Below are positions 35,631 through 50,600 of a DNA stretch of 64,000 nucleotides, in pieces; the stretch's first letter is position 1, and each line of letters starts with the position of its first letter. The DNA comes from Macrostomum lignano (Eukaryota), in NCBI GenBank assembly GCA_002269645.1, contig NIVC01000583.1, positions 186,001 to 250,000 of the forward strand, given 5' to 3'. The notes beneath the pieces were generated by a model. The model ran no database searches and was not told the origin of the DNA. It was given only the letters and a program-made list of their open reading frames with translations. The position numbers and the translations under genes are program-made.

Positions 35631-38600
35631 ATGAATCGTGGAATGCCGCGGAGCACTGAAGCAGCAACTGCAGCTGTGCCATCGGTTGCTGCTGCCACAG
35701 TCGCCGCCGAGGCAGCCAACAGGCGTCTGATGGCTGTCCGGCTGCACCAGCTGGCGGCCGGACTGACAGCGCACGGACTCAGCCGGGTGGTGGGCGAGGC
35801 AAGCCAGACTGGCCGCCTACTCTGGCTCTCTGTGTTCACCTGCGCTCTGCTGGGAGTGAGCCAGCACACTGCCAGCCTGGTGAAGCTCTATCTAAGCTAC
35901 CCTGTCGGATCCACAGTTCGTCAGGAGGTCAACGGTTTTGAGTTCCCCGACGTCACCTTGTGCGACTCGATGCTGAAGAAGTTCTTCCTATACAATGTGT
36001 CGTATTTTGATAGCGCGCGAGACAAAAGTTTTACAAGGTGACTTTTTTTATTCCACTGTACATAGTCTTAGAGAAAGCGGGGATTCACCTACACCTGAGT
36101 TCGTTTCAGATGCATGTAGAAATGCAGGGTTACATGTAGATGGGGAAGGACGGTCTAGAAATCAAGTTTGGCTACATGCAACTTGAACAATTCAAATGAG
36201 AAGGCATCGGTGAGTGTAGCCAAAAACGATCAGGCCCGGATCGAACCGAATGCAATCGGTAACTTTTTGCGAAACCAGTGAACTAGTTTCTAGATATCCA
36301 GCCCTTTCAAGTCGACCTTTTACTCCTGGCTCGCTTGAGTTGATATCCCCATTAAACTGAAAAAAATTAGGTCTTCTTTTAGTCTGCTTCTTTTAGTTTT
36401 TGTTTAAATTAAGGCTCGTTCACACTGCATGCTGTTGCGTGATCAACTACGTTGGCGCCCCTCAAAGACGGCCGGCCCCCTAAGTAAAAATCCTTGCTTG
36501 TACATACATGTAGTTCTTCGTCGCTTGGAACATCAGTCGCGTGGTTTGACGACTCAATTAGTGTCTGCCAGGCTGTTTGAACGAGCTTTAATTATGCGAA
36601 AGTCATCAGTGGATTTGCATCAATTGCTACCCAGCAACACCATGATCGATTGATTGTAACCTGATTGATTGATTGATTGCTGACCTCAGACTCCCAACCT
36701 CCGGGTTTTTTTCAACCCAAATATCTGAGTCATGTATCAGTTTGTTAATTTAAGAAGCACCGGCCAAACCTGCAGGTATTCGCAGGTCATCCAGACTCTT
36801 CTTGGCTACAAGTTCGGCTGGGAGACGAAAGCTTTCGTCAGAGCCACGTACACAGCCTCCGGCCACAAGTTCAACATGTCCAAAGTCAGCGCCAGAGTTC
36901 TTGACTTTCTGCTCCACTGCGAGTTCGATCACACCGCCTGCGACTTTGGAAACTTCAGCCTCTACTATGACAATCAGTTCGGCAACTGCTACACGTTCAG
37001 GCCGGCCTGGCGGCGTCTGGGCAGGGCTGGCGCCTCCGCCGGCCTCATCCGAAGGCGTATTCAGCATGCCAGTGAAGTATGAGACAGACTAGGCCCATGG
37101 GCTAAGGTCTGCGATGCTTCACGCCTGCCCCTATCTTCAGCAGGTCAAGGCTGGTGGGAGGTCTGCACCCTCTATTTGCCTCTGGCAGCCGCAGACCCCC
37201 CCCCACGCTGTCTCGCAAGTCGACCCAGGGTACTCGTCCCCGCGTGTGTTCAAGGCAGTCCCTAGGGCTGCTGGACAGACTGGGCTCCGGCGCTGGCGAC
37301 CCTATCCAGTGGCTTCGGCCGAATTTGGGTATGCGGGTCTGGCTCGCCAACCTGCAGGCCGTGGTACTGCTCAACGTACTCTCTAATGCCTAAGGTGTTG
37401 ACCGTGCCGATGGGCTGGAAGGCCGGGGAGTAGTCCGGTCGCAAGCGGTCCCCCTCCTGGTGTCGGGCCAGCCTTGAGGGTGCTATTGGCCTACTGCCCG
37501 GTCAGGTGGAGCGGCCGGGTGGGTACCGCGCCCCTTTGAGGGTAGCCCACCAACCTTTTATCATGGCCTTCGAGCCGACTATGGATAAACAAGCTATTTC
37601 TAGGGACGGGGACCCTTCTAAACCCCAACCTCAGTCCGAAGGACCGGCCGGCCCTGCTGGCAGATCCCAACCGACTGATTCAACTGTGGCAAAGGAAGGA
37701 CCGGCTGGCTCTGCTGGCAGATCCGACCAGAGCTACCAAACTCAAAATACCCTAAGACCTGCCAGCTCCGCTGGTGGATCTAAGGGAACCGCGAGCTCTG
37801 AGCCTAAAGGACCGGCCAAATCTGGCAGATCCGATGAAGCTCAGCGGGCTCGGCTTGAGCGCAAACGCGCTAAACAACGCGCCAAAAGGCAGGCCAAGAA
37901 GGGAGCTGCGGGGGCCAAAGCGGCGGCGTCCACCATGGATGCTGAAGCGACTGGAGTCCCAAGGCAACCAGGCGGGCCGGCCGGTGGAAGCTCCAGTAGT
38001 TCAGCGGCGGCGCTCCCTGGAGCTGCTGCCGCGGCTGCTGAGGCCGAAACCACGGCGCAACAAATGGCCACTGCCAACAAGGAGGTTCCTTCGGGAGCTA
38101 CCTTTGCGGCGAAGGCCAAGGCCAAAATCCCGGGAGTGATCATCCAAGGTCGCGACCAGGACTGGACCACTGATCAGCTTCAAAAAGTGTGGAGTGCTGT
38201 TGACTCCTATCTGATTGAGCTGACTGTCGAGGAGGGAATCTCCATCGGCGTTGAGCGGATGGTGCTGCGAAGCACATTCGTTCTTATTGCTCCTAGCAGC
38301 GAGGAGGACGCTCGGCGGCTGCTCCAGCGGCTACCGACGGTCTCCTTGGATGCTGACCTTGGTGGAGCTCTTTTTCTTCGCGAGGGCCAGCGTCCAAAGA
38401 CGATACCCTATGTGGTTTTCGTCCCTGCTAAGAGCACCGCAGCTGGACCAGACGTTATTCGCCGGGTCCTACTGCGTCTGAACCCCGACCTCCCTGCTAG
38501 TGGACTGGTGTATCACCGCAAAGTCCGCAGGGGGGAGACGGGCAACTCAATTGTCCTCGGCCTTTCCAGCACTTGGGCGAGTCGGTACCCTAATGGATCC

Positions 38601-47600: not shown

Positions 47601-50600
47601 TCAAATTCATTTACATGAGAGCACCTGCTAAGCGGAACCTTGTCCCGCATAGCGATCTGTGCCTCAACTTTCTCAACGAGTGTCAGGCCAATCGCGTCTT
47701 CACCGATGGCATTGCCTCAACGCTCAACCTGAGACAGCGCTACTCCGTAGCTATCGACTCGCGCGATAACATCAATGACCATTGGAACCCTGGTGAGCTT
47801 CATTGCTACACCGACGGTTCTAAGCAGTCAGCCAACACCGGCTTTGGTGTTGGAATCTTTCTGAACGGGAGGGTCATCGCTACCCACGCTCAATACACTG
47901 GGGTCAACTCCAGTGTTTTCCAAAATGAAGTTCTGGCCATCAGCTCCTGCACTGCAGAGCTTCTCGCCACTGGCGTTACTGGTAAGAACATCATTTTCCA
48001 TTCGGACCGCCAAGCTGCCTTGCACGCCATCAGTGGCTGCAGCACCAACTCTGCTACAGTCCTTGACTGTATCAAACTCCTCAATGTGTTGGGTTCCGCC
48101 AACAAAATTACCCTTAAGTGGGTTCCGGGGCATGTGGGGATCCGAGGAAATGAGTTGGCTGACACCCTTGCAAAAGTTGGTGCCTCCGGCTCCTCTCTCG
48201 GCCCCGAACCTCTTGTCCCGATTCCTGGCTGTGTCATCGACTCGCGCATCAAAGCGTGGATCAGGACTCAGCACCGCTCGACTTGGGCGAACCGCACGAA
48301 CTGCAGGCAATCCAGAGGCGCTGTCCCTCAGCCCTCTCACCAGCTCCGGAAGCTCCTCTTGCGCCTCTCGCGCAGAGACATCCGGGCTGCCACCATGACC
48401 CTCTCTGGTCACGGCTGCTTCTCCAGGCACCAGTACCTGCAGGGCAACGCCACCAACGCCACCTGTAGTTTCTGCAACTCAGGTGACGAAACCGCTGAGC
48501 ATTTCGTCAGCATCTGTCCCGCCTTCACGCGGGCCAGACTCACTTACCTCGGGCCACACACATCTATTACTGAAGCGTGCAAACCCGAAAACTTTAATCA
48601 GCTCATGCGCTACCTTCGGGCCACCCGCAGGGCTGAACTCTCCTTTCCAGAGAGCACCATAGCTGCTGGCGACACTGGGGGACCTCCCTGGGCGGCGCCA
48701 ACCCTCCGTCCATAGCGACGCGTCGGCCGTTCAGGGACTAGCGGAATGGGCGCCCGCGCCTTCCCGCTGTGTCCCCTCCGGGACAGCCCTGCAGCTAAGT
48801 CAAGTCAAAGTACATAGTCTTAGAGAAAGCGGGGATTCACCTACACCTGAGTTCGTTTCAGATGCATGTAGAAATGCAGGGTTACATGTAGATGGGGAAG
48901 GACGGTCTAGAAATCAAGTTTGGCTACATGCAACTTGAACAATTCAAATGAGAAGGCATCGGTGAGTGTAGCCAAAAACGATCAGGCCCGGATCGAACCG
49001 AATGCAATCGGTAACTTTTTGCGAAACCAGTGAACTAGTTTCTAGATATCCAGCCCTTTCAAGTCGACCTTTTACTCCTGGCTCGCTTGAGTTGATATCC
49101 CCATTAAACTGAAAAAAATTAGGTCTTCTTTTAGTCTGCTTCTTTTAGTTTTTGTTTAAATTAAGGCTCGTTCACACTGCATGCTGTTGCGTGATCAACT
49201 ACGTTGGCGCCCCTCAAAGACGGCCGGCCCCCTAAGTAAAAATCCTTGCTTGTACATACATGTAGTTCTTCGTCGCTTGGAACATCAGTCGCGTGGTTTG
49301 ACGACTCAATTAGTGTCTGCCAGGCTGTTTGAACGAGCTTTAATTATGCGAAAGTCATCAGTGGATTTGCATCAATTGCTACCCAGCAACACCATGATCG
49401 ATTGATTGTAACCTGATTGATTGATTGATTGCTGACCTCAGACTCCCAACCTCCGGGTTTTTTTCAACCCAAATATCTGAGTCATGTATCAGTTTGTTAA
49501 TTTAAGAAGCACCGGCCAAACCTGCAGGTATTCGCAGGTCATCCAGACTCTTCTTGGCTACAAGTTCGGCTGGGAGACGAAAGCTTTCGTCAGAGCCACG
49601 TACACAGCCTCCGGCCACAAGTTCAACATGTCCAAAGTCAGCGCCAGAGTTCTTGACTTTCTGCTCCACTGCGAGTTCGATCACACCGCCTGCGACTTTG
49701 GAAACTTCAGCCTCTACTATGACAATCAGTTCGGCAACTGCTACACGTTCAGGCCGGCCTGGCGGCGTCTGGGCAGGGCTGGCGCCTCCGCCGGCCTCAT
49801 CCTGCTGCTGTACCCACCATCGGTGGACGCTAATTTTGACGAGGATCGGACAGTCAAGACAGTCACGGGGCTGGAGAATAGAGGCTTCCAGGTCTGTTTG
49901 CAGTACCTACCGGTACCAGTATATGTACATGAACTCCACTTATAGCAGTACATTCACATGTAGCAAGGCCAATACCGCTAATACCTGTGTTGTACCTGTG
50001 CTTCTCCGGCTGTCTAGCACAGTGGTTTGGGCTCTCCGCCTTCTCAACCGGAAGCCTTCTCGTAGCTCTTAGTAGCGTAGGTAATGCTGCCAACAGTTCC
50101 TTCAGGTCTTGGCCTTCGGTGAGGTGAGCTTCCCGTCAGAGTGAAATAAACAAGTCAACGAACTCAGCACAGCGTGCAGATTTGAAGATTAACGAACAAA
50201 GCGTCTGGTCAGCAGATCCCATGAGTGGTTGGGAATACCGTATTAGCTTCCTTTTAGGCTTGGGCGTCTAAGTTTAGTCAGGCCAATGAAGAAAGAGTGG
50301 ATTGGACAATGGAACTGTCAGAAAAACTTAGAAAACTGGGAAAGGAGGAACTGAGAAACTAGACACTAAGAACTCCTTGACTGAACCAAGGGTGAGGGGG
50401 TCCGTATTTATAGTCTGGGAATCCCCCAGTGCACCTTTGTGCGCGAGACCTCGTGACTTGTTCCATTTTTAGAACTGACGTCACTTCCCGCCAGAGAGAA
50501 GGCAGGGGTCCCCAGGCAAAGTGCACAGGGCCGTGTGACTCAGTGTCTAATTTTAGAAACATGAGTCACCTCTTACCTTAGAGGAGGCAAGGGCCCCAAG

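Follow-up and report, generated by a model that had tools for sequence, protein, structure and literature searches.

Does a retrotransposon that lands inside a coding exon necessarily abolish its host gene, or can the target-site duplication made upon insertion be long enough to rebuild the exon that was struck? This question is raised by a DEG/ENaC channel gene of Macrostomum lignano, found in a stretch of 64,000 nucleotides (hereafter the window; NCBI GenBank assembly GCA_002269645.1, contig NIVC01000583.1, positions 186,001 to 250,000, forward strand), in which exon 2 is interrupted by a nested pair of long interspersed nuclear elements (LINEs) and a complete copy of the same exon follows downstream of them. 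We find that the locus very probably represents a real, insertion-coupled duplication of 993 bp that regenerates exon 2. As a whole it is best explained, at a probability that we put at about 0.5, by the recent insertion of an R1/I-like LINE with a wide-stagger duplication, leaving a regenerated exon 2 and a hypomorphic allele.

A perfect 993-bp direct repeat brackets the insert

Positions 36058-37050 and 48810-49802 of the window, both on the + strand, are 100% identical over 993 bp, with 0 substitutions and 0 gaps (window self-BLAST and direct string comparison), and chance cannot account for a perfect repeat of this length. Outside the pair of repeats that flanks the inner LINE, it is the only long non-tandem repeat that self-comparison of the window returns for this region. 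Immediately to the left of the two copies the bases differ (TTATTCCACT versus TCAAGTCAAA), as they do immediately to the right (GAAGGCGTAT versus TGCTGCTGTA), and the ten bases beyond each end are unrelated, so that the borders are sharp and the repeat stops precisely where the 11,759-bp insert (37051-48809) between the copies begins and ends. No spacer intervenes at either junction, 37050/37051 or 48809/48810.

The repeated unit is host sequence, made up of 718 bp of intron 1 (36058-36775) and the first 275 bp of exon 2 (36776-37050). To its left, the upstream copy continues into an unduplicated 20-nt 5' stub of intron 1 (36038-36057, + strand), which carries the sole copy of the exon-1 donor, and then into exon 1; to its right, it breaks off within exon 2, leaving a truncated fragment of 275 nt with an acceptor and no donor. 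The downstream copy is contiguous with the remainder of exon 2 and runs into it in frame. A 5' transduction was considered as the source of the upstream copy and rejected, both copies being continuous with their local flanks.

LINE target-site duplications usually span a few to a few tens of base pairs, a range that the 993 bp of the outer repeat and the 476/477 bp of the inner one both exceed. As there are 0 differences across the 993 bp, the outer insertion must be very young. The first-pass annotation of this DNA had described an element within coding exon 2 flanked by a giant target-site duplication, and this description is borne out: the break falls between 37050 and 37051, 275 nt into exon 2, and the repeat has the structure of a target-site duplication, with no spacer and with target DNA that is continuous with the flanks. 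Its coordinates (an insert of 11.8 kb, a donor at 36038, acceptors at 36776 and 49528, and the end of exon 2 at 49891) are all accurate, and the stretch of upstream intron that it counted, together with the acceptor, into the duplication (about 720 bp) measures 718 bp.

Two related LINEs, each flanked by a long duplication

The insert is composed of two LINEs, one nested within the other, both on the + strand and thus in sense orientation relative to the host gene (six-frame open reading frames (ORFs) and Pfam). The outer one, element A, is present in two pieces (37051-40091 and 45484-48809), ends at its 3' side in ...AAGTCAAGTCAAA and has no poly(A) tail. Its ORF1 (37506-39068, + strand) is open for 520 codons counted from the first possible start, although the true start may be an internal ATG, and has no Pfam match. 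Its ORF2 (39108-48715, + strand), to which Pfam assigns an apurinic/apyrimidinic endonuclease (APE), a reverse transcriptase and an RNase H domain on separate pieces, is broken by the nested element with its duplication and by two frame changes in the 5' piece, while the long 3' piece has no internal stops.

The inner one, element B (40092-45483, + strand), is a 5,392-bp LINE with both ORFs open and a 3' tail of (TAAG)n. Its ORF1 spans 40653-41576 and its ORF2 41576-45394, both on the + strand, the latter encoding a protein of 1,272 aa with APE, reverse transcriptase, RNase H and a C-terminal Cys motif (Pfam: Exo_endo_phos_2, residues 135-251, E=5.5e-22; RVT_1, residues 527-779, E=2.5e-30; RNase_H, residues 973-1101, E=5.4e-13). 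Around 41572-41578 the stop codon of ORF1 overlaps the start codon of ORF2 as TAATG; overlaps of this type are compatible with coupling by termination and reinitiation, which has been described for some LINEs of the R1 clade. The order of the domains in ORF2 is the one expected for an R1/I-like LINE. Among solved structures, the endonuclease of element B is nearest to TRAS1 (3.7e-17) and R1Bm and its reverse transcriptase to L1 ORF2p. The ORF2s of elements A and B share the same domain order and about 40% amino acid identity (tblastn, with the pieces of element A compared individually rather than joined), and Pfam detects no restriction-like endonuclease (RLE) domain in either, only the APE type. 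Both thus look like R1/I-like LINEs, clade names having been seen only as automatic labels, such as 'R1DM', on distant matches.

Element B, too, lies between two copies of a direct repeat, 476 bp long upstream (39616-40091, + strand) and 477 bp long downstream (45484-45960, + strand), which consists of element A ORF2 sequence. The two copies differ by 0 substitutions and a single 1-nt difference in length (self-comparison and string comparison), and adjoin element B without a spacer (40091/40092 and 45483/45484). The locus therefore holds two independent insertions by two related families, each flanked by a duplication that is about half a kilobase long or longer. Finding this architecture again in a nested relative with 40% identity speaks against coincidence or mis-assembly. 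The duplication around element B is the main internal control of the locus: the giant outer duplication is not a one-off. As to the order of events, i.e. whether the two elements inserted sequentially in place or arrived as a composite, the 0 differences in 993 bp and the one 1-nt difference in 477 bp are counts too small to decide.

Element B ORF2 is 100% identical to UniRef proteins of M. lignano. In addition, dozens of predicted M. lignano proteins in UniRef hold a 95-100% identical stretch that corresponds to 5-20% of this ORF, and they are named after the domains of their hosts (GPCR, kinase, RRM, SET, C-type lectin, thioredoxin). Fragments of the B family are thus often fused into gene models and, therefore, often lie in or beside genes. 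On an ENA contig of 138 kb, a distantly related copy of the elements lacks long flanking repeats, but it is degraded and hence uninformative.

The host gene encodes a DEG/ENaC channel and needs a complete exon 2

The host gene can be modelled with five exons on the + strand, joined at canonical GT/AG sites and in phase. Exon 1 (35631-36037), which begins at the ATG and is bounded by the donor GT at 36038 (AAG/GTGACT), encodes the N-terminus with the HG motif, the first transmembrane segment (TM1) and the sequence FPDVTLC (Pfam: ASC, profile positions 5-75, E=1.5e-11). The complete exon 2 (49528-49891, 364 nt) is delimited by an acceptor AG at 49526-49527 and a donor GT at 49892 and covers profile positions 141-233. 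It is followed by exon 3 (51239-51609; profile positions 230-322; splice sites read), exon 4 (52002-52530; 359-383) and exon 5 (53591-53911; 407-454, E=1.8e-11), the last of which includes the second transmembrane segment (TM2) with the GAS motif and the stop codon. The acceptor, CCTGCAG/G, is the same at 36776 and 49528. Exon 1 is 407 nt long and ends with two bases of a codon, a phase that the 364-nt exon 2 continues correctly, and the combination of exon 1 with the downstream exon 2 yields an open product of 663 aa that covers positions 5-454 of the 455 in the Pfam ASC profile in a single stretch (E=1.8e-50). Exon 1 and the ORF around 49528-49891 also each match this profile on their own.

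The closest solved relative of the 663-aa product is FaNaC, the FMRFamide-gated sodium channel, and an exhaustive HMMER search recovers M. lignano paralogs at 56% (P0081), 37% and 39% identity. Searches with a word-indexed protein method had missed the channel, both with exons 1 and 2 and with a low-complexity-free query of exons 1 to 3, so that we do not take negatives from indexed searches for this gene as evidence. The alignment with P0081 is free of gaps over the junctions between exons 1 and 2, 2 and 3, and 4 and 5, whereas the junction between exons 3 and 4 falls into a variable region of the alignment and is, unlike the other three, not confirmed by the paralogs. H48-G49, FPDVTLC and the GAS motif of TM2 are invariant columns in an alignment of five sequences, as befits a member of the DEG/ENaC family. 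With the paralog alignment gap-free and the motifs in place, the gene model is sound and a complete exon 2 is needed. An additional exon between exons 1 and 2, which could have been sought for the uncovered profile positions 75-141, was rejected, the paralog alignment having no gap there.

Two further claims of the first-pass annotation hold at this level, namely that exon 1 can be joined to 49528 in the correct phase, the frame remaining open for 663 aa through three further exons, and that a complete exon 2 (49528-49891) is present downstream, together with the acceptor native to it and 718 bp of its original upstream intron.

Which acceptor does exon 1 use?

Whether this arrangement rescues the gene depends on the choice between two acceptors. 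The insert and the upstream 993-bp copy lie within what would be an intron 1 of 13,490 bp; introns in M. lignano average 1.1-1.4 kb, some genes are very long, and kilobase-scale introns are normal (PMC5730564). If exon 1 is joined to the fragment at 36776, the frame enters element A and meets a stop after 11 codons. In our splice model only the direct join of exon 1 to 49528 is productive and any use of the proximal acceptor is not. Scored with a rough donor matrix, the gene's own donors reach 4.1-8.6, whereas the GT sites inside the proximal fragment reach at most about 4 and one just after it, at 37154, reaches 6.2; every GT in or just after the fragment either loses the frame or follows a stop. 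Lacking a donor, the proximal fragment would not, as splicing is generally understood, be definable as an exon. The first-pass annotation had pointed out that the identical upstream acceptor at 36776 competes with the distal one; this competition is real, and it leads only to loss of frame or an early stop.

Several features of the locus weigh against productive splicing. The acceptor at 36776 has an identical upstream context of 718 bp, lies 738 nt from the donor as opposed to 13,490 nt for 49528, i.e. 18-fold closer, and is transcribed about 12.7 kb earlier; being identical, nearer and earlier, it should be favoured in a kinetic competition, and with it the non-productive choice. The sense-oriented insert moreover holds two AATAAA motifs (39152, 41668), and the stretch between the two acceptors contains 24 donor-like sites with scores of 6 or more on the rough matrix, all of which could end or mis-splice transcripts. 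Spliced-leader trans-splicing affects about 39% of M. lignano genes (PMC5730564), and a distal acceptor orphaned of its donor could likewise be trans-spliced, giving an mRNA without exon 1. Because the two copies have 0 differences, selection cannot yet have acted on them, and that the frame is open is uninformative about function after the insertion. Finally, no insertion-free allele was found in a contig search with element B ORF1, element B ORF2, the UniRef match of element B and the two intronless genes that neighbour the channel.

The two outcomes can be told apart in RNA only at some distance from the junction. Whether 36037 is joined to 36776 or to 49528, the RNA reads the same for the next 275 nt; the diagnostic boundary is exon-2 position 275/276, beyond which ...CATCC is followed by TGCTGCTG in the productive transcript and by GAAGGCG in one that reads through into element A. 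Short reads or amplicons over the exon-1/exon-2 junction can therefore not separate the acceptors, and the check by junction that was proposed along with the first-pass annotation is flawed for this reason. Insertion-free alleles or homeologs would also yield the same correct mRNA as a rescued allele. Since the GenBank annotation left out transcripts that overlap repeats (PMC5730564), the absence of the gene from the annotated proteins says nothing about its expression.

Taken from the arrangement of the splice sites, self-rescue is structurally possible, and we consider it about as likely as not that the insertion allele yields some correct mRNA. A reduced output is likely, and the allele would most likely be hypomorphic rather than null.

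Proposed origin and alternative explanations

In the sequence of events that we propose, element A, carrying its relative B, would have struck exon 2 of an M. lignano DEG/ENaC paralog very recently, by target-primed reverse transcription with an unusually wide stagger. A first, bottom-strand break would have been made 20 nt into intron 1, where the 3' tail of the element now adjoins 48810 (equivalent to base 36058), and a second, top-strand break 993 bp downstream in exon 2, where the 5' end of the element adjoins 37050; filling in both single-stranded stretches would then have left 993 bp on each side. The same reading may be applied to element B inside element A. By direct reading of both events, no shared motif or microhomology is seen at the 5' junctions; at the 3' junction of element B, a target TAA could pair with the (TAAG)n tail. 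Joined to the rest of exon 2, the downstream copy would provide an intact exon with its own branch region and acceptor, so that some pre-mRNAs might skip the donor-less proximal fragment and splice exon 1 to 49528, producing wild-type mRNA, while many others would take the acceptor at 36776, which is transcribed first, and be truncated or degraded.

The most serious alternative accepts the structure and takes the allele to be a functional null, in which exon 1 is always spliced to 36776, the transcripts stop, are polyadenylated or are degraded within the element, and the insertion persists as it is young, heterozygous or masked by near-identical copies. We consider this a substantial possibility, if one that we do not favour. 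An acceptor that is identical to the distal one, 18-fold nearer to the donor and first to be transcribed speaks for it, as do the in-frame stop 11 codons into the element, the AATAAA signals and strong donor-like sites of the sense-oriented insert, and the recency of the event implied by 0 differences in 993 bp. So does the genome itself: M. lignano is described as a hidden polyploid, its assembly comprising 180 Mb of duplicated blocks at an identity of at least 95% (PMC5730564), and a null allele of one copy could thus persist without any rescue. On the other hand, the proximal fragment has no usable donor, exon definition, where it contributes, should weaken its acceptor relative to that of the complete distal exon, and no feature of the sequence prevents the distal join.

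It is very improbable that the repeat is instead an artefact of assembly, in which two haplotypes or homeologs, each with an element A but at separate positions in one kilobase, were falsely joined within the element. The assemblies of M. lignano are known as difficult, repeat-rich and redundant (PMC5730564), the repeat is 100% identical, and the 1-nt length difference of the inner pair occurs in a context prone to long-read errors; yet such a chimera requires that one family inserted twice, independently and within 1 kb, on two copies, in addition to the false join, the coincidence has to recur for element B inside element A, and no frameshifts are seen in the host exons or the neighbouring ORFs, so that local accuracy looks good. 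Both junction sequences must also exist in reads. Nor do we expect that the duplication is real and the stagger not made by the element, be it that a pre-existing 993-bp tandem duplication was hit at its joint or that the second strand was primed at a distant host nick, a replication intermediate or a repair end. In human cells deficient in nucleotide excision repair (NER), L1 duplications are mostly >100 bp and 38% of those are >1 kb, for which distant, unrelated nicks were proposed (PMC5223499), and direct reading reveals no evident common motif at the two second-strand break sites of our locus. An insertion landing exactly on a tandem joint, and twice, is however very improbable, a host nick would result in the same insertion-coupled target duplication and leave the argument for exon regeneration unchanged, and the fact that both of two events, by two related families, show the pattern suggests a property of the elements or of the host. 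A recent insertion with a wide stagger, giving a partially functional allele, thus remains our preferred reading.

Other features of the window

Beyond the channel gene, two intronless ORFs lie downstream on the - strand (55734-57143, 469 aa, and 60076-61443, 455 aa). They are tandem paralogs (73% nucleotide identity across about 520 bp), appear from their sequence to encode multi-pass membrane proteins, and have no record that we could find in the contig collection. A dispersed repeat of 238 bp, probably a short interspersed element, occurs at 87% identity just upstream of exon 1 (34869-35098) and in intron 4 (53281-53510). The first part of the window (1-20000) is very dense in minisatellites, including arrays of a 10-bp unit (x136, 200-1561), a 19-bp unit (x41, 4511-5290; inside a long open frame beside ankyrin-like sequence) and a 28-bp unit (x38, 18054-19131) as well as several others, which fits the known richness of the M. 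lignano genome in tandem repeats. Rfam gave no match in the window.

Implications

If the distal splice is used, a LINE can hit coding sequence without destroying the gene, and it would be the size of the duplication, rather than the site of the insertion, that decides the damage. An acceptor and an exon fragment are, by the same geometry, left over as spare parts from which duplicated exons or alternative splicing could arise. More valuable as a lead is, in our opinion, whether these M. lignano families make kilobase-scale duplications as a rule. That two related, APE-only LINE families routinely integrate in the germline with breaks 0.5-1 kb apart is a proposal that we put forward only tentatively, and one on which the odds are somewhat against us. 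Were it correct, every insertion would duplicate a kilobase of target, hits in exons would often leave an intact copy and thus a non-null allele, and partial or whole duplicates of exons and introns would be seeded across the genome; it would also be the first case of systematic kilobase-scale LINE target duplications in an animal germline, and one for which a second endonuclease is not needed.

The nested duplications bear, in addition, on the second-strand step by which LINEs integrate, which is poorly understood, and long LINE duplications may add to the repeat-rich, redundant character of the M. lignano genome. For annotation, they mean that long, perfect local repeats can pass for mis-assemblies and mislead gene prediction.

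Comparison with known systems

Transposons that insert into exons and are spliced out, giving leaky alleles, are known from maize, with Ds in waxy and adh1, and from Drosophila, with 412 in vermilion. As there, the element inserted in the exon would be treated here as an intron, or as part of one, so that the allele would not be null; however, those cases rely on cryptic sites in or near the element and usually yield an altered mRNA, whereas here the duplication supplies the native acceptor and exon and the predicted product is exactly wild type.

With regard to the length of the duplication, the closest parallel is Dualen-4b_cRei, whose new insertions in mutation-accumulation lines of Chlamydomonas reinhardtii carry duplications with a median of 900 bp, read as the result of widely spaced nicks (Lopez-Cortegano et al. 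2023, PMC9977147), and thus comparable in size to the 993 and 477 bp described here. Dualen elements encode both an RLE and an APE, and the authors tentatively credit this pair for the long duplications (PMC9977147). Elements A and B have an APE only, besides reverse transcriptase and RNase H, and with one type of endonuclease instead of two they do not belong to Dualen despite duplications of Dualen-4b-like length. The host is moreover an animal rather than a green alga, and exon regeneration does not feature in the portions of the Dualen discussion that we consulted. Among animals, an earlier record is that of the R9 LINEs of bdelloid rotifers, which are specific for ribosomal DNA (rDNA) and produce a duplication of 126 bp (Gladyshev and Arkhipova 2009, cited in PMC9977147, PMC2861651). 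As far as these sources describe it, that length is fixed, the site is a specific one in the rDNA and the endonuclease is of the R2 type (RLE), while the duplications of elements A and B are 4-8 times longer, variable and in targets outside the rDNA. A literature search returned no paper on LINE target duplications in M. lignano.

For human L1, duplications >100 bp make up <10% of the events in HeLa cells (Servant et al. 2017, PMC5223499); in NER-deficient cells, where most of them exceed this length, the authors remark that exons could be duplicated (PMC5223499). Those were engineered insertions in cultured, repair-defective cells, in contrast to a resident germline insertion in the genome of a wild-type animal, occurring twice in nested relatives, and the remark on exons is a general one that describes no regenerated exon. 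Given two nested events (993 and about 477 bp) by APE-only elements, our data suggest that kilobase-scale target duplications are confined neither to the dual-endonuclease Dualen elements nor to repair-deficient cultured cells.

Splicing has been followed for a de novo insertion mediated by L1 in human CDKL5, where the target-site duplication measures 119 bp and includes exon 3 (Hiatt et al. 2021, PMC8087252). As in our locus, the target DNA duplicated by a LINE brings exon sequence along with splice signals, and reverse transcription PCR showed that the spliceosome does use the duplicated copy, both copies being spliced in, with a frameshift and disease as the result (PMC8087252). In CDKL5, however, the insertion is intronic and a whole exon of 35 bp is doubled, whereas here it lies inside the exon and the upstream copy is devoid of a donor; there the gene is broken, while here the duplication could preserve it.

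The first-pass annotation had proposed that long target-site duplications soften exonic insertions and seed exon duplication. This general idea is only partly new, as kilobase-scale LINE duplications and their potential to duplicate exons have already been published (PMC5223499, PMC9977147, PMC8087252), and exon regeneration is a corollary of both. New is the configuration found in M. lignano, where the insertion lies inside an exon, the duplication reaches back over the acceptor and the exon is regenerated, in an animal germline, by an APE-only R1/I-like element, and with long duplications seen twice, in nested relatives.

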